This document shows, one piece after another, positions 5,032 to 60,205 of a stretch of 64,000 nucleotides of DNA. Location: NCBI GenBank assembly GCA_028826165.1, contig JAPDFW010000093.1:124001-188000 (forward strand), read 5' to 3'. How positions within the stretch are numbered: position 1 is the stretch's first letter; each line of letters starts with the position of its first letter. The notes under the pieces are model-generated. The model searched no databases. It was not told the DNA's origin and saw only the letters and a program-made list of their open reading frames with translations. This DNA is from Anaeramoeba ignava BMAN. Taxonomy: Eukaryota > Protista > Anaeramoebae. A program made the position numbers and the translations under genes.

Positions 5032-8000
5032 ATGGATGAACAATCAAAACAACGTTATCATGATATTTTTACACAAGCAGATGTAATAAATTATCTTTTA
5101 TTCTTTTTTTTTAAAATTAAAATTAAAATTAAAATTAAAATTAAAATTAAAATTTTATTAGAAAAGGTCTCGTGGATTTCTTTGTAAAAATCAAAAATAC
5201 TTCACAAAATAATTATTTTTATTATTTATTATTTAATTTTAAAAATTATTTAGATCCTCAAGAATTAAAAATGCTTTTAGAAACAAATGGATATTCATTT
5301 CATGAAGAAGGATTAGAAAATCTTGTTGAACATATTTGTGGAGGTAAATTATTTGATTTTAATTAATAAAAGGAAAAGCTTTCTCAAAAAAAAAAAACTT
5401 TTTAGAACACAAAAAAGTTTCATTCCATAAATTTTTATCAATGATGAATTTTTTGATTGAAATGCATCAATTATTTCTTGAATTGGATGAAAATGGAGAG
5501 TTTGAATTTAATTTTTTATTTTAAATTTATTAAAAATATCAAAAAAAATAATAATTTTGTTTTGATAGTGAAAATTTAAGCAAAGCAGAATTTGCACATG
5601 CAATTAAAAAAATGAAGTTTGAATTGCAAAAAGAACAATTAGATTTAATGTTTCAAGTGAATATTTATAACCAAATTTATCAAGCAATTTATATTAAAAA
5701 TTTATTTTAAAATTATAAAGGAATTTATTTTAAAATTATAAAGGAATTTATATTAAAATTATATTAAAATTATAAAGGAATTTATAAAGGAATTTAGAAT
5801 TAAATTTAGAATTAAATTTAGAATTAAATTTAGAATTAAATTTATATTAAATTTAGAATTAAATTTATATTAAATTTAGAATTAAATTTATATTAAAATT
5901 ATAAAGGAATTTAGAATTAAATTTATAATTAAATTTAGAATTAAATTTAGAATTAAATTTAGAATTAAATTTATAATTAAATTTAGAATTAAATTTTAGA
6001 ATAAAATTTTAGAAATTTAGAATAAAATTTTATAATAAAATTTTATATTAAAATTTAAAAATTAAATTTAAAATTAAATTTAAAATAAAATGAAGAATAA
6101 AAAAATTTAAAATTAAAATAAGAATAAAAAATTTAGAATTAAATTTAGAATTAAATTTAGAATTAAATTTAGAATTAAATTTAGAATAAATTTAGAATTA
6201 AATTTAGAATTAAATTTAGAATAAAATTTAGAATTAAAATTTAGAATTAAATTTAGAATTAAATTTAGAATTAAATTTAGAATTAAATTTAGAATTAAAT
6301 TTAGAATTAAATTAAATTTAGAATTTTAGAATTAAAAGAATTAAATTTAGAATTAAATTTAGAATTAAATTTAGAATTAATTTAGAATTAAATTTAAATT
6401 AAATTTTAAAATTAAATTTAGGAAAATTTAGAATTAAAATTTAGAATTAAATTTATAATAAAAATTTATAATTAAAATAATTTAAATTAAATTAATTAAA
6501 ATTTATATTAAATTTAGAATAAAATTTTAAAATTTAGAATTAAATTTAGAATTAAATTTAGAATTAAATTTAGAATTAAATTTAGAATTAAATTTAGAAT
6601 TAAATTTATAATTAAATTTAGAATTAAATTTAGAATTAAATTTAGAATTAAATTTAGAATTAAATTTAGAATAAAATTTAGAATTAAATTTATAATAAAA
6701 TTTATAATTAAATTTATAATTAAATTTATAATTAAATTTAGAATTAAATTTAGAATTAAATTTAGAATTAAATTTAGAATTAAATTTATAATTAAATTTA
6801 GAATTAAATTTAAAATTAAATTTAGAATTAAATTTTATAATTAAATTTATAATTAAATTTATAATTAAATTTAGAATTAAATTTAGAATTAAAAATATAA
6901 TTAAAATTTAGAATTAAATTTATAAAGGAATTTAGAATTAAATTTATATTAAAATTTAGAATTAAATTTATATTAAAAATTTAGAATTAAATTTATATTA
7001 AAATTTAGAATTAAATTTATATTAAAATTTAAAATTAAATTTAGAATTAAATTTATATTAAAAATTATAAAGGAATTTAGAATTAAATTTAGAATTAAAT
7101 TTAGAATTAAATTTAGAATTAAATTTATAATTAAATTTAGAATTAAATTTAGAATTAAATTTAGAATTAAATTTAGGAATTAAATTTAGAATTAAATTTA
7201 GAATTAAATTTAGAATTAAATTTAGAATTAAATTTTATAATTAAATTTAGAATTAAATTTAGAATTAAATTTAGAATTAAATTTAGAATTAAATTTAGAA
7301 TTAAATTTAGAATTAAATTTATAATTAAAATTAAATTTAGAATTAAATTTAGAATTAAATTTAGAATTAAATTTATAATAAAATTTATAATAAAATTTAT
7401 AATTAAATTTATATTAATATTTAGAATTAAATTTAGAATTAAATTTAGAATTAAATTTAGAATTAAATTTAGAATTAAATTTAGAATTAAATTTATATTA
7501 AAATTTATATTAAATTTAGAATAAAATTTAGAATTAAATTTAGAATTAAATTTATATTAAAATTTATATTAAAATTTATATTAAAATTAAAATAAGATAA
7601 CTGATACAAATCGAAATGGTCTTGCTTCATTTGAAGAATTTGTTTCAACATTATTATATCTTTATAATATTAAACGTGTTTTTGAATCTGCTGATACTGA
7701 AGGAAATGGAACTTTAGATACAACTGAATTTTATAAATTCCTTCCCATTTTAAAAATTAAAGCTTCAAAACATGATGCTCAACAAGCTCTTTCTCAATTT
7801 GATCTGGATAATGTAAATTATTTTAAATTTTAATTTTAATTTTAATTTTAATTTTAATTTTAATTTTAATTTTAATTTTAATTTTAATTTTAATTTTAAT
7901 TTTAATTTTAATTTTAATTTTAATTTTAATTTTAATTTTAATTTTAATTTTAATTTTAATTTTAATTTTAATTTTAATTTTAATTTTAAATTTGGAAAAT

Positions 8001-8082
8001 TTTTTAACTTCAAAAAAAAAAGGATGGAGAATTAAATTTTCCAGAATTTGTTCATTTCATCTTCACAATAAGAGATATTTAA
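5032..8082 (+). CDS. Six-EF-hand calcium-binding protein; exons 5032-5082, 5162-5183, 5254-5343, 5406-5498, 5569-5656, 7597-7812, 8023-8082
   Basis: Spliced loops include DENGDENLSKAEF, DTNRNGLASFEEF, DTEGNGTLDTTEF and DLDNDGELNFPEF, plus two degenerate N-terminal hands. All introns are GT-AG. Confidence 0.85.
5690..7590. repeat. 12-mer (TTAGAATTAAAT)n array filling a ~1.9-kb intron (5657-7596)
   Basis: Direct inspection; variant units TTATAATTAAAT and TTATATTAAAAT are interspersed. Confidence 0.95.
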
Positions 8083-8195
8083 AACAAACTTGATTTCTTT
8101 TTTCTGAATCCAAAACAAAAATAATTATTTTATTTTTTCCAAAAATTATTTTTTTTCATTTTTTTTCTTTTCAAAACAAATTAAAAAAAAGAAAA

Positions 8196-10040
8196 ATGAA
8201 TGATTGTTTATTTTTTGGTTCAAATTTATTTCACTTACTTTTAAAAAATGAATCAGAAATAATTTTAAAACCTGTTCAATTTAAATTTGAAAATAAAATG
8301 AAAAATCAAAATGAAAAACAAATTAAACAAATTGTCTCAACATTTTTTTCAACAATTTTCCTTTTTGAAAATGGAAAAGCAATCGAATTTATTAATTATT
8401 CAAGTCAAGATCATCATTGTGAAAAAATCAAAATTGAAAATATTCAAAAAGTAACTGTTGGTTTTAGTGTTGAAGCTATTTTAACAAAAGAAGGAAATGT
8501 ATTTGCAAAAGGATATGATATTAATCCAAAAAAACCAAAAGAATTTATCAATATTTCATCATTAATTGAAGATACAAATGATAGAATAATTCAAGATATT
8601 GTCTCTAGTGCTTATGCAATTTACTTATTAACTTCAAATCAAAATGTTTATGGAATTGGTTCAAATGAATATGGTCAACTTGGTTCTTTTATAAATGAAA
8701 CACAAAAACCAATTTTAATGATGAAAAATGCTTCTAAAATATTTTCAGGAAGTTACTCAGACTCGATTTTTATTTTAGATTCAAATCAAGAATTATTTGT
8801 TTGCGGATTTAATCAATATGGCCAACTTGGAATTGGAAGAAAAACAAAAACAGAAACAGAAATAGAAACAGAAACAGAAACAGAAACAGACGAAGATAAA
8901 GAGATTTTTAATTTAACCAAAATCCAAAATATTCCAAAAGGCAAAATAATTGATATTAAAACTGGAAATAGACATTCAATAATGTTGATTGAAAATGAAA
9001 ATGAAAATCAAAATGAAAATCCAAATGAAAATCCAAAAAGAAAACTTTATTCATGTGGTTATCGGCAAAGAAATGGACTTAACAAAAATACTTATGAATT
9101 TACTGAAATCAAATCATCTTTATTTGAAAATGATAATATTCTTGAATTTTCTATTGGATTTAATCATACTTTGATTTTAACCTCAAAAGGAAAACTTGTT
9201 TCATTTGGAAAAAATGAACATGGTCAATTAGGAACAAGAAATAAAACAGATCATTTCATTCCAATTCAAATTAAACTTCCTAAATTAAGATTTAATGAAG
9301 ATATTTCCAATTATCATGTTTCTTGTGGAGAAGATAATTCATTTCTTTACCATACTCTTCCTTCTTTTTCCAATCTTGAAGAAGATCTGATAAAACTATT
9401 TAGAAGAAAAGAATTTTGTAATATTTCATTTAAAACCAAAAATGGAGAAATAATCAAAGCTCATAAATTAATATTGAAATATAGATTAAATGAAAATCAA
9501 AATCAAATTGAAAAACTTCAAGAAATTATTTCAAATAAATCAATTAAAGAATCAAATCAAATATTTGAAATGATTTATTCAAACAATTCCAAAATAAATC
9601 CAAAATTATATTGTGAAATTAAAGAAATTATAAATTTCAATGAAAAAATTGAAGAAGCAATGAAAAGAATTTATTTAAATGAAAATGAAAATGAAAAAGA
9701 TTTTATAATTGAAAGAAAAGAAAAACAATATAAATTTCCTAAATTAATATTAATAATGAGAAGTGAATTATATCGAGGAATGTTTTTATCTGTAACAGAT
9801 GATACTTCTAATAAAGTTACAGATTATAGTGAATTAAGTAATAAATCATTTCAAATATTTGAATATTGGATTTATTCAAATCAAATTAAAAATGAAATTC
9901 AAATTACACAAGAAATTATTAATGAAATTAAAATTGGAATTGATTATTTTCAATTAAATCAAACATATCCAAATTTATTTGATTTATTAATTAACAAATT
10001 TAATAATCAAAATTCTAAAGAAAAGTGTTTGATTTTTTAA
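8196..10040 (+). CDS. RCC1-repeat protein with C-terminal tandem BTB-like domains
   Basis: 614-aa intronless ORF with RCC1 motifs (GSNEYGQLG, GFNQYGQLG, GFNHTLIL..GKNEHGQLG) and BTB starts ([16 protein letters not shown]; [21 protein letters not shown]). Confidence 0.9.
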   Translation: MNDCLFFGSNLFHLLLKNESEIILKPVQFKFENKMKNQNEKQIKQIVSTFFSTIFLFENGKAIEFINYSSQDHHCEKIKIENIQKVTVGFSVEAILTKEGNVFAKGYDINPKKPKEFINISSLIEDTNDRIIQDIVSSAYAIYLLTSNQNVYGIGSNEYGQLGSFINETQKPILMMKNASKIFSGSYSDSIFILDSNQELFVCGFNQYGQLGIGRKTKTETEIETETETETDEDKEIFNLTKIQNIPKGKIIDIKTGNRHSIMLIENENENQNENPNENPKRKLYSCGYRQRNGLNKNTYEFTEIKSSLFENDNILEFSIGFNHTLILTSKGKLVSFGKNEHGQLGTRNKTDHFIPIQIKLPKLRFNEDISNYHVSCGEDNSFLYHTLPSFSNLEEDLIKLFRRKEFCNISFKTKNGEIIKAHKLILKYRLNENQNQIEKLQEIISNKSIKESNQIFEMIYSNNSKINPKLYCEIKEIINFNEKIEEAMKRIYLNENENEKDFIIERKEKQYKFPKLILIMRSELYRGMFLSVTDDTSNKVTDYSELSNKSFQIFEYWIYSNQIKNEIQITQEIINEIKIGIDYFQLNQTYPNLFDLLINKFNNQNSKEKCLIF

Positions 10041-56495: not shown

Positions 56496-59400
56496 TCATT
56501 TTCTAATACCTCTTTTATCAAAGGAATCAAGCGCTTCTTTTGAAATCCAATCTATAAATGAAATCGATTCAATATTTAATATTCAATTCAATATTCAATT
56601 CAATATTTAATTCAATATTTAATATTCAATATTCAATTCAATTCAATTCAATTCAATATTTAATTCAATATTCAATATTCAATATTCAATATTAACACAA
56701 TTTTTGAATGAAGGAATTATTTTTGAGACAAAATTCAAACACGAGAAATGAGAAAGAGTTTTGTTGTTTTCTATTGTCAAATTCATTCATTTTCTTAAGG
56801 AAATTTTGATTAACTGATTTTTGGATTTTTGAAATTTTTTTTTTTTTAAAATTTTTTTGAATTTGTTTTCAATTAATTTTTTTTTTGGAATGAACTACTT
56901 GTCTTAAATATATTGTTCTCTTCATTCAATTCTAAAATGATTATTCTCACAAAATGACAAAATGAATAAGTTGATTTGATTAAAATTTCTCTAATTACAA
57001 AAATGATCGAAAAAATAGGGTTGCCCCAACCTGTGCAAAATTTCATCTCGTGATTATTTTCCAACAAGATAAGGTAAGCATGTTCTTTTCATCGAAAATT
57101 TGCACAGGTTGCGTCTGATCGATCAAAAAGAATAAAATAAAATCGTTAGTTTTTTCACTACATCAACAAGTTTTTTATTTTTCTCCACTATGAAAAATTA
57201 AGTTGATTTGCGATCAAAATTTCTTCAAAAAAGTCTTTGGATGAATTTGATGTCAAATTGACAAATAAATATCCCAATATTGAAACATTAATCGTATGTT
57301 GATCTTGAATTTTTTTGGAATGAAATTTTATTTGGATCTACTGAACCAAAAAAAAAAAAAAAAAAATTTTTTTTGCCCCAAATCAAAAAATTTTTTGAGA
57401 ATCGGGCAAATTTTTGATCTTTCTCCTTTTGGAAAGAAAAAAATCATTAATCCAAAAATTTTATTTTTTCTTTTCTTTGATTTTTTGGTTTTCTTTTTGA
57501 TTTTGATTCACCTAAAAAACAACAAAAACTCTTTCTCATTTCCAAGAATATCAAATATTCATTCATTGAAAAATTGTGTTATTTAATTCAATTCAATTCA
57601 ATATTCAATATTCAATATTCAATATTCAATATTCAATATTCAATATTCAATATTCAATATTCAATATTTAATTCAATATTCAATTTAATTCAATATTCAA
57701 TATTCAATATTCAATATTCAATATTCAATATTCAATATTCAATATTTAATTCAATATTCAATTTAATTCAATATTTAATATTCAATTCAATATTCAATTC
57801 AATATTCAATATTCAATTCAATATTCAATATTCAATATTCAATATTCAATATTCAATATTCAATATTCAATATTCAATATTCAATTCAATATTCAATTCA
57901 ATATTCAATATTCAATATTCAATATTCAATTCAATATTCAATATTCAATATTCAATATTCAATATTCAATATTCAATATTCAATTCAATATTCAATATTC
58001 AATATTCAATATTCAATATTCAATTCAATATTCAATATTCAATTCAATAATTCAATATTCAATATTCAATTCAATATTCAATATTCAATATTCAATTCAA
58101 TATTCAATATTCAATATTCAATATTCAATTCAATTCAATTCAATTCAATATTCAATATTCAATTCAATATTCAATATTTAATTCAATTCAATATTCAATA
58201 TTCAATATTCAATATTCAATATTCAATATTCAATATTCAATTCAATATTCAATATTCAATTCAATATTCAATATTCAATATTTAATTCAATTCAATATTC
58301 AATATTCAATATTCAATATTCAATATTCAATATTCAATATTCAATATTCAATTCAATATTCAATATTCAATTCAATATTCAATTCAATATTGAATATTCA
58401 ATATTTAATTCAATATTTAATTCAATTCAATATTCAATATTCAATATTCAATATTCAATATTCAATATTCAATATTGAATGCAAAAATATACTTGATTTA
58501 AAAGCATGAGAAAAAGCTTCTTTTAAATTCTTTTTTGGAACATAATTTTCAGGAACCATTTTATGAATTGATTTAATTAAATCTCTTAAAGTTCTTCTAA
58601 TTGTTGTTTCAGTTACTTCAGCTTGTTGACTTAAAGCTTTTTGAGTAATTCTAACTCCTTCAAGTGAAGCTGCAAAATATATTGAAATTGCTGTAATTGT
58701 TCTTGGATTTCTTAAATTTGTAAAACTTCCATCAAGAATTTGTTTTGAAATAAATCCTGCTAAAGTTTCAACTTCACTTCCAAGTGGAATTGATTCAAAA
58801 AATTTTGCCTAAAATAATTAAATTAAGATCAAAAATCAAAAATCAAAAATCAAAAATCAAAAATCAAAAATCAAAAATCAAAAATCAAAAATCAAAAATC
58901 AAAAATCAAAAATCAAAAATCAAAAATCAAATACAATTAAAGAATGAGCAGAAACACTGCAAATAGAACTATTTAAACCTAATTCTTTTGATATAAGATT
59001 TGTTGTTTTTCCCATTTTTTTAGTTGATATTCCTGTTGTTTCAGATATTTCTTTTAAAGTTAATGGAATTGTTTTCTCTCTTGCTGCGATTAAAATAGCT
59101 GAAACAGCAATTCTCCTAATTAAATTTACTCTTGGTTGAACTTTTTTAATATATTGATTTGTTCTATTTTTATAATCCAAATAATTTTATAATTTAAATA
59201 ATATTATAATCCAAATATTTTTATAATCCAAATATTATTATAATTTAAATATTTTTATATTCCAAATATTATATTTTAAATATTTTTATAATCCAAATAT
59301 TATTATAATTTAAATATTTTTATAATTTAAATATTTTTATAATTTAAATAATTTTATAATCTAAATAATTTTATAATTTAAATATTATTATATTCCAAAT

Positions 59401-60205
59401 ATTATATTTTAAATATTTGAATGAAGAAAATTACATTTCAAGAGTTCTTGAGACAATACTCATATCAAGTGATAATTTAATGCATGTTTCATGAATAATA
59501 AAATAAGCAATTGGAAATATTTTTGATTTACCAAATGCTTTTGAATTAATTTCTTCTCCATTTTGAAAAGGATTAATTTTTTCCATGTTACGTGAAAATT
59601 CATCAAGAATTGCTGGCTGTTTTGATGATAAAACTCCAAATAGAGTTTGTGATTGAATATCAATAGTTGAAAATGATGAAATAAATCCTCCTCCTCCATA
59701 AGGATCATTTGGAACCTTTTAAGCAAATATTTTTCAATTTTTAATTTTTGAATTTTTAATTGAATTTTTAATTTAATTTTGAATTTTAATTTCAAATCAA
59801 ACTTCTTCAGATTTAAATTGAAAAGATTCAAGATCTGGACTCATAATATCTAAAGATTTTCCTTGCTTAATATTTAATGATTCAATTGGATAAGGCATAA
59901 ATAATTTTTCTTCAATACAAAAACCACATTCACAAACTAATAATCTTCCAGAATTTCTAAAAATAAATAATTGATAAAAATAAATTTTTCAATTTGATTT
60001 TGATTTTGAATTTGAATTTGAATTTCAATTTCAATTTGAATTTGAAATTGAATTTGAAATTGAATTTGAAATTGAAATTGAATTATTTTGAATTTGAATT
60101 TCAATTTCAATTTCAATTTCAATTTTGATTTATATTTTACATATATTTAAGTTTTGTAGAATTACATTTCGGACATTTTGTTGGAAATTTTGATTGAAAA
60201 TTCAT
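56496..60205 (-). CDS. TFIIB-family transcription factor; exons ~60205-60141, 59956-59804, 59715-59435, 59163-58935, 58808-58493, 56551-56496
   Basis: Zn ribbon CPKC..VCECG, cyclin fold 1 (AILIAAREKTIPLTLKEI) and cyclin fold 2 (RNPRTITAISIYFAA..AEVTETTIRR). The last exon NWISKEALDSFDKRGIRK* is in correct phase. Confidence 0.85.
56568..56693. repeat. (TTCAATA)n heptamer array, left arm
   Basis: Same unit and orientation as 57581-58478. Confidence 0.9.
56694..57580. mobile_element. Candidate non-autonomous TIR element (MITE/foldback-like), 887 bp, intronic
   Basis: Termini are AACACAATTTTT (56694-56705) and AAAAATTGTGTT (57569-57580). A second inverted block lies at 56745-56770 / 57516-57542. 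ATT flanks both sides. There is no credible ORF. Confidence 0.6.
57581..58478. repeat. (TTCAATA)n heptamer array, right arm
   Basis: Direct inspection. Confidence 0.95.

Follow-up and report, generated by a model that had tools for sequence, protein, structure and literature searches.

A non-autonomous and very recently mobile cut-and-paste transposon of Anaeramoeba ignava, probably of a Zator-type lineage

We analyzed a 64-kb stretch of the Anaeramoeba ignava BMAN genome (contig JAPDFW010000093.1, positions 124,001 to 188,000 of the forward strand; G+C 18.9%), called the window here, and conclude that the block at 56694-57580 is a real non-autonomous cut-and-paste transposon of this protist, which was mobile very recently. 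It is very probably an internally deleted form moved in trans, with a transposase that is most likely of a Zator-type lineage. The initial annotation, made from the letters of the window, had proposed an undescribed non-autonomous transposon with terminal inverted repeats (TIRs), and this was borne out by TIRs located at the limits of homology, target site duplications (TSDs) of 3 bp, further copies, a coding relative and an empty site. The literature search found no paper on Anaeramoeba transposons; the family is a new one in a poorly studied protist, and an ordinary member of a well-known class. All positions are in window numbering unless a contig is given (C55, C1, C62 and so on), and L-numbers denote extracted loci.

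At the borders of the element the window reads ...caatATT/AACACAATTTTTGAATGAAGGAAT...ATTCATTCATTGAAAAATTGTGTT/ATTtaattc..., with slashes marking the ends. The outer 12 bp of the TIRs are perfect inverted repeats, and 24-25 nt match at 92%. Further inward, the left subterminal block matches the reverse complement of the right one at 23/25 positions with one indel, after which the inverted similarity drops to AT-rich background. The inverted end-to-end alignment of the element scored 18, compared with -62 +/- 11 for shuffles. The left subterminal block is a candidate second transposase-binding site. All sequence details given earlier for the 12-bp ends, the imperfect inward similarity and the flanking ATT were correct, as was the description of a complex non-coding block splitting a heptamer array with both arms in the same orientation; Tandem Repeats Finder (TRF) detected the unit (ATTCAAT) on both sides.

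Copies of the element were sought by BLAST in the A. ignava assembly (42.8 Mb in 147 contigs), and two further full-length copies, 99% identical, were detected at C55:64848-65727 and C1:996583-997460. Homopolymer lengths are the sole differences between these two; the window copy is set off from them by 3 substitutions and an A-run of greater length. Alignment with the flanks demonstrated full colinearity of the three short copies between the outermost bases of the two TIRs and unrelated sequence beyond; the flanking triplets are ATT/ATT in the window, AAT/AAT on C55 and ATT/ATT on C1. Two more copies with the same ends are surrounded by unrelated DNA and carry 3-bp duplications of their own, so the block did not arise by chance. 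The TIR pattern, searched genome-wide with at most one mismatch, is confined to the 8 termini of 4 elements (the three short copies and a long element on C62). The TSDs are ATT, AAT, ATT and AAT in the window family and AAT and AAT in a sister family on C64 and C137, all six being A-W-T. The element thus proved multi-copy rather than single-copy, with four TIR-bearing loci, distinct flanks and a 3-bp duplication at every copy, in line with the transposon proposed initially. We also observed a TIR-like right end at C56:574107-574130 (L070; TATTCATTTAAAAATTGTGTT, 2 mismatches), followed by ATT, for which no partner end was detected at this locus. Its flank is also among the loose contig ends of the read data for the C55 locus, and it is probably a solo right end, that is, a truncated fifth copy. 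The other TIR-like match with 2 mismatches, at C133:75622, looks like chance.

Evidence of mobility came from four public read runs analyzed at the locus of the C55 copy. In the coordinates of this locus (L002) the 880-bp element occupies 1501-2380 and the TSD copies 1498-1500 and 2381-2383. We detected a read joint from 1496 to 2380, which skips 883 bp, i.e., the 880-bp element and 3 more, with 4 ambiguous letters at the joint, as expected for a TSD. This joint is present in X1 (DNA, depth 57.6) and in X4, which is from another sample and another study, and filled-junction contigs were found in X1, X2 and X4. The C55 flank occurs once in the assembly, and therefore the form shorter by 883 bp is an allele absent from the assembly and not a paralogue; the C55 insertion is therefore not fixed. 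The precise empty site is explained more easily as an uninserted allele than by excision, and under both explanations the family has moved very recently. The uninserted allele with one TSD copy is the kind of empty site that the initial annotation had proposed to look for. Two further observations were made at this locus: an X1 contig jumps within the element from L002:1625 to 2223, inserting 19 other letters, and may represent an internally rearranged copy absent from the assembly, and at L002:2528 all runs have T where the assembly has C.

The empty allele also bears on a Tc1/mariner-type miniature inverted-repeat transposable element (MITE), in which the duplication would be TA and the TIR would start from ACACAA... 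The junctions of all six insertions read ...T/A...T/A..., so TA flanks can be drawn, and this parse, offered as an alternative in the initial annotation, agrees by eye with every copy. With a TA duplication the skip would be 880 bp; the empty allele is 883 bp shorter, which sets the TSD at 3 bp and excludes the TA parse. The outer bases also agree in all six insertions.

We detected a longer, transposase-coding copy, likewise suggested as a check, at C62:269584-272482 (L031:3086-5983). This 2.9-kb element has the same ends, each TIR with one mismatch in 24 relative to the window family, and TSD AAT, and is located inside an (ATTCAAT)-type array. BLAST homology with the window element covers the first 444 bp at 76% and the last 220 bp at 71%. 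According to the alignment, the 5' 445 bp of the C62 design, including an internal hairpin, and its 3' 150-220 bp are still present in the short element, and the middle is unrelated; on this comparison, the short element has the usual anatomy of a deletion derivative. The hairpin lies directly upstream of the transposase open reading frame (ORF) in the C62 element, with folding of -26.8 kcal/mol (z -2.1) in the window element and z -1.8 in the long one. In the C62 element an ORF of 498 aa overlaps one of 305 aa; compared with intact paralogues, the two are a single transposase gene with a 1-nt shift in an A-run just past HHVQRGTDKE; this may be a real defect, leaving the element dead, or a homopolymer error of the assembly. 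Two features of this copy count against the proposed explanation, namely the single break of its transposase frame in that A-run and the identity of merely 71-76% between its subterminal DNA and the short copies. At this identity the C62 copy is related to the short elements as a cousin rather than as their parent.

These data can be compared with an explanation in which no transposon is involved and a dispersed structured or regulatory DNA module was spread by segmental duplication. The low copy number (4) and the conservation of the internal hairpin are compatible with such a module. However, the homology ends exactly at the TIRs with an own 3-bp duplication for each copy, the empty allele is precise and the relative encodes a DDD transposase, and we give this explanation practically no weight. 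As a transposon, the family is tiny (three short copies and one long copy) and very young, with the C55 insertion still polymorphic. In the mechanism that we propose, the short element would keep only what is needed in cis (24-nt TIRs, a 27-nt subterminal block, and the 5' leader with the hairpin), and a ~585-aa DDD transposase with an RNase-H fold, of the kind encoded by the C62 element, would move it in trans. Integration would proceed by a 3-nt staggered cut at A-W-T, with gap repair producing the 3-bp duplication.

Six-frame searches detected intact transposase paralogues on C64 (585 aa) and C51 (616 aa) with 38% identity, in addition to fragments and more distant relatives; one paralogous transposase is 100% identical to the hypothetical protein M0811_06608 of A. 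ignava. The C64 element (L048:3394-5881) has TIRs starting with AACCAACTTTT and TSD AAT; the termini of this family are AAC... Its ~630-bp derivative at C137:357997-358623 (L053) has the same TIRs and TSD AAT and is located within a (TTTAGATTTATA)-like array of tandem repeats. A long hairpin was found at L048:5436-5580 on the minus strand (-35.5 kcal/mol, z -3.6), directly upstream of where the C64 transposase begins; its position is that of the weaker hairpin of the window family, to which it is unrelated in sequence.

Several observations were made around these relatives. Paralogous BTB-like/TLDc-like genes lie on either side of the C64 transposon (L048:1657-3090 and 7674-8741), the second looking degraded mid-gene. 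The C51 element (L049:3192-5659, 2.46 kb) reads TGATCGAAAC...GTTTCGATCA and is flanked by a dispersed repeat. In the repeat copies at C107:197982-198608, C132:120994-121619 and C51:1727-2347, an unrelated 537-bp segment replaces the C51-type element; it likewise begins with TGAT and ends with ATCA, and a clean 3-bp TSD is not readable there. A 504-aa ORF beside the C51 transposon (L049:1397-2911) has by eye the look of a MULE/Mutator-type transposase, and the region may be a transposon cluster. On C142 (L038:286-3315), a 1009-aa open frame shares the CxxC / DF / WSDNG / HGKSICDSHFG core (33% identity there). It also contains extended N/Q repeats, with a CCHC zinc knuckle at the C-terminus, and may be another lineage or a gene kept by the host. 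Distant relatives of the transposase in the genome have 24-25% identity; those at L040, L041, L042 and L044 (C26, C96, C48 and C90), with FSDGG...HG(K/R)N..DxHFG, are adjacent to ORFs of USP-type deubiquitinases, and three of these loci are 99% identical from the common left boundary …ATATGAGAGATTCG.

The A. ignava transposases have no match in Pfam, and PDB sequence profiles gave nothing useful. In the AlphaFold (AF2) model of the C-terminal 286 aa (pLDDT 74), the core has the beta-beta-beta-alpha-beta-alpha-beta-alpha order of the RNase-H fold, with D372 on strand 1, D449 after strand 4 and D489 at the start of the next helix. The best structural matches (Foldseek, exhaustive aligner) were retroviral integrases (Z 10.3) and Mos1 (Z 10.0, 168 residues aligned), followed by Metnase, Sleeping Beauty (Z 8.6) and IstA. 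A profile search against 1.84 billion representatives detected 2384 relatives at E<=1e-3, of which 650 reached E<=1e-10, the named ones including A. flamelloides, Naegleria gruberi, Lithocolla, Phalansterium and Pompholyxophrys; word-based protein searches with the 46-sequence alignment and with the relative P0106 were unproductive. C334, C337, H344, D372, D449, H483 and D489 are invariant in 46 diverse full-length relatives, and by this alignment the invariant columns are a CxxC..H motif followed by a D,D(40)D triad. Some relatives have N-terminal matches of the helix-turn-helix (HTH) type, and two match the IS630 NCBIfam model. The distant relatives next to USP genes carry WSDGG...HGxxxxDxHFG motifs in common with the transposase family.

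TSDs of 3 bp are made by PIF/Harbinger, CACTA, AcademX and Zator. The first two, favored in the initial annotation on account of the 3-bp TSD, were not supported: we found no DDE_Tnp_4 or CACTA-type domain, the termini are AACAC...GTGTT and not CACTA, and the TSD is A-W-T and not TWA. The long element encodes one transposase with no match to DDE_Tnp_4 or Transposase_21, and has no Myb-like second ORF, so that a non-autonomous PIF/Harbinger or CACTA element, with the TSD length in its favor, is highly improbable. AcademX is unlikely, as its transposases are much larger and are accompanied by an XPG-type nuclease.

Similarity to bacterial ISAzo13/TP36 is what defines Zator, and the TSDs of the two groups are alike 3 bp long (PMC10045372); in amphioxus, Zator-1 has TIRs of 33 bp and TSDs of TAA/TTA (PMC12905397). 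A TSD of 3 bp was found here in all six insertions and at the empty site. Four of the 46 relatives match Pfam DUF7869 over the part with the second and third D, the cut-off being reached by P0106 (26.1 bits) and P0129 (27.2 bits). In the Atlas, the nearest clusters by features are DUF7869 clusters (0.95), and one structural neighbor (TM 0.79 over 263 residues) is a eukaryotic cluster in which 95% of the members have DUF7869 and 11% have PF07592. We compared a 102-sequence alignment of the family core by hhalign with 12 TP36, 10 IS630 and 17 IS3/rve transposases from sampled bacterial genomes. TP36 aligned over 161 columns (P 4.3e-4, probability 34%), including the second and third catalytic residues of the family (WSDGG~ADgGG, CD.H~IEHR), compared with P 0.11 for IS630 and P 0.064 for IS3/rve. 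The TP36 hidden Markov model (HMM) also aligns the DUF7869 protein P0129 over its whole core (E 0.006 in 157 sequences) with the motifs D.KK, DFK.N, DgG and P..SK.N..(E/D).R.F. Through these DUF7869 intermediates, the sequence comparisons suggest that the transposase is probably a divergent Zator lineage, i.e., a eukaryotic relative of bacterial ISAzo13/TP36.

Other results weigh against this placement. Neither PF07592 nor DUF7869 matches the A. ignava transposases themselves, and six-frame searches of the A. ignava genome with PF25273 and PF07592 found nothing. The TP36 hhalign probability of 34% is no better than that between separate families (TP36-rve P 1.7e-4, IS630-rve 7e-5), the first catalytic D is unaligned to TP36, the third catalytic residue is D in the family and E in TP36, and pattern and tblastn searches detected no relative in bacterial or archaeal genomes. 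The family (DUF7869-related, CxxC..H, DDD, 3-bp A-W-T) could instead be a superfamily of its own or a member of Sola2, which we regard as rather unlikely. The lack of a direct PF07592 match, the hhalign similarity to TP36 as weak as among recognized separate families and the motifs in common with the USP-adjoining relatives are in agreement with it, as is the DDD triad, which Bao et al. 2009 reportedly described for Sola. Sola makes 4-bp TSDs; a 4-bp parse fails across the copies, and the 3-bp TSD in six of six insertions and at the empty site disagrees with it. TP36 was also the best of the three tested insertion sequence (IS) families by about two orders of magnitude, and the Atlas cluster with DUF7869 and PF07592 is a close structural neighbor. 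Structurally, integrases and mariner-type transposases match best; the Majorek classification, which PMC5751038 cites, reportedly places Zator in the integrase/mariner-type group and Sola in another. As to Tc1/mariner itself, the fold close to Mos1 and the two relatives matching the IS630 model favor it; however, the transposases have no Tc1/mariner Pfam domain and align to IS630 in hhalign with P 0.11. With the TSD at 3 bp as well, a Tc1/mariner-type MITE is very improbable.

Besides the placement in Zator, the transposase family may be a distinct unnamed superfamily, eukaryote-wide, with CxxC..H and D,D(40)D and 3-bp A-W-T TSDs, whose A. ignava members home to AT-rich arrays resembling their own TIR (TGAAT-type); we consider this combination doubtful. 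If true, such homing would explain two independent insertions in the rare (ATTCAAT)n array. The insertions in the window and on C62 are both in (ATTCAAT)-type arrays, with different TSDs and different element lineages. A perfect 28-mer of the array occurs 407 times genome-wide, 51 of them in the window, which suggests some tens of kilobases in total, of the order of 0.1% of the genome. Wherever two units of the array meet, the hexamer AATATT is present. On a single strand, AAT then AT(T) is read at four of five sites, and the TIR contains TGAATGAAGGAAT, which resembles the array complement TTGAATATTGAAT. Three of the six insertions lie in tandem arrays. Since 42% of the window consists of such arrays by TRF (score >= 50), satellite blocks and repeat-coding genes among them, an insertion in one is by itself unremarkable. 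Repeated use of (ATTCAAT)n could reflect a sequence preference of the transposase or the survival of neutral insertions, and with two cases it is a lead and not a finding. The proposal that microsatellites serve as a safe haven is thus suggestive only: the double use of the same rare heptamer array agrees with it, and array landing alone does not add to it.

The intronic location proposed initially was confirmed for the C55 copy, is inferred for the C1 copy and is plausible for the window copy. The C55 copy is inside a former 83-nt intron of a Sel1-repeat gene, between the exons ...AAFLGSSNAQFI and VGNCYQNGNGC. A joint from 1426 to 2393, found in X4 only, skips 966 bp with CT..AC ends, i.e., GT..AG on the gene strand of a spliced transcript; the C55 copy is intronic and is spliced out within the 966-nt intron. 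On C1 the gene concerned encodes a G-alpha protein, and the copy, antisense to it, is placed between ...TTGINSIDFQNKDLLW and (E)VIDVGGQRSERRKW, a few bases past a GTAAAA donor, in an intron of originally ~85-90 nt; protein colinearity suggests that it is intronic. In the window, the ORF of a TFIIB-like gene, when read straight on, reaches a TGA stop 8 codons inside the microsatellite. Alternatively, a GTATAT donor at ~58492 and TTTATAG at ~56557 would define a 1.9-kb intron enclosing the array and the element, and the candidate terminal exon that follows has an exon-like G+C of 31%, compared with 10% in the adjoining non-coding DNA. On these signals we consider it somewhat probable that the window copy lies in an intron of the TFIIB-like gene; if the ORF simply ends 8 codons into the array, the copy is not intronic. 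No annotated gene model was found on record for the ORF neighboring the element. The C62 copy is between ORFs that, by their sequence, look like exons of a single minus-strand gene. The coordinates in the window are listed in Table 1. A perfect (ATCAAAA)x15 microsatellite was also observed at 58828-58931, where it separates the two cyclin-fold exons of this gene and seems to occupy an intron.

Table 1. Positions of the transposon, its parts and adjacent features in the window
Feature	Position	Strand	Basis
Non-autonomous DNA transposon, 887 bp	56694..57580	+	no transposase-related ORF
Left TIR AACACAATTTTTGAATGAAGGAAT	56694..56717	+	inverted-repeat pair, genome-wide pattern search
Right TIR	57557..57580	-	inverted-repeat pair, genome-wide pattern search
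Left subterminal inverted block GAAATGAGAAAGAGTTTTGTTGTTTT	56745..56770	+	also kept in C62 long element (alignment)
Right subterminal inverted block	57516..57542	-	inverted match to left block
TSD, left copy, ATT	56691..56693	.	sequence; length set by C55 empty allele
TSD, right copy, ATT	57581..57583	.	sequence; copy comparison
Left arm of microsatellite (ATTCAAT)n	56567..56693	+	TRF period 7, 18.4 copies
Right arm of microsatellite (ATTCAAT)n, orientation as left arm	57584..58480	+	TRF 57586-58480, period 7, 129 copies
Internal hairpin, stems CCTGTGCAAAATTT / AAATTTGCACAGG	57027..57111	+	alignment with long element; fold
TFIIB-like gene, two cyclin-fold exons	58440..59831	-	six-frame translation, sequence
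Candidate small terminal exon (…NWISKEALDSFDKR…), preceded by TTTATAG	56515..56556	-	sequence inference

Taken together, the copies, the read data and the coding relative describe a concrete DNA transposon, currently or very recently active, in the Anaeramoeba genome. Filled and empty alleles were detected in the same culture, and the insertion is therefore usable as a marker of ploidy or clonality and is a candidate tool. For a large transposase family without its own Pfam model, present from amoebae to animals, the analysis supplies an anatomy (TIRs, 3-bp TSD, autonomous and deleted forms). It also appears that a compact genome tolerates and splices out insertions of ~900 bp in ~85-nt introns of conserved genes, the splicing being seen at C55.

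Among known systems, Zator has in common with the family described here the 3-bp TSD, TIRs of tens of bp and short non-autonomous derivatives, as well as one transposase that combines an N-terminal HTH with an integrase/mariner-like RNase-H core; the profile similarity to TP36 is weak, though the best of three IS families. In contrast to Zator, PF07592 is scoreless here, the third residue is D (in CDxH) and not E, a CxxC..H motif precedes the core, and the TSDs are AAT/ATT rather than TAA/TTA. Tc1/mariner (ITm) elements are similar in the catalytic fold (Mos1 Z 10.0, Sleeping Beauty Z 8.6), the HTH-type N-terminal region and small TIR-bounded elements, but differ in having a TA duplication instead of 3 bp, and our family has no Tc1/mariner/IS630 domain and no significant hhalign similarity to IS630. 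The DDD triad is as in Sola, from which the family appears to be set apart by the 3-bp TSD and by the TP36 similarity, which is a Zator mark by definition. Compared with MITEs (Ds, mPing, Stowaway), the short element is present in 3 copies only, is with 887 bp longer than classical MITEs, and its direct parent is missing from the assembly, the coding relative being 71-76% identical; as in MITEs, it has no transposase, has termini and subterminal sequence in common with a longer coding relative, and exists as near-identical copies sited in introns and non-coding DNA.

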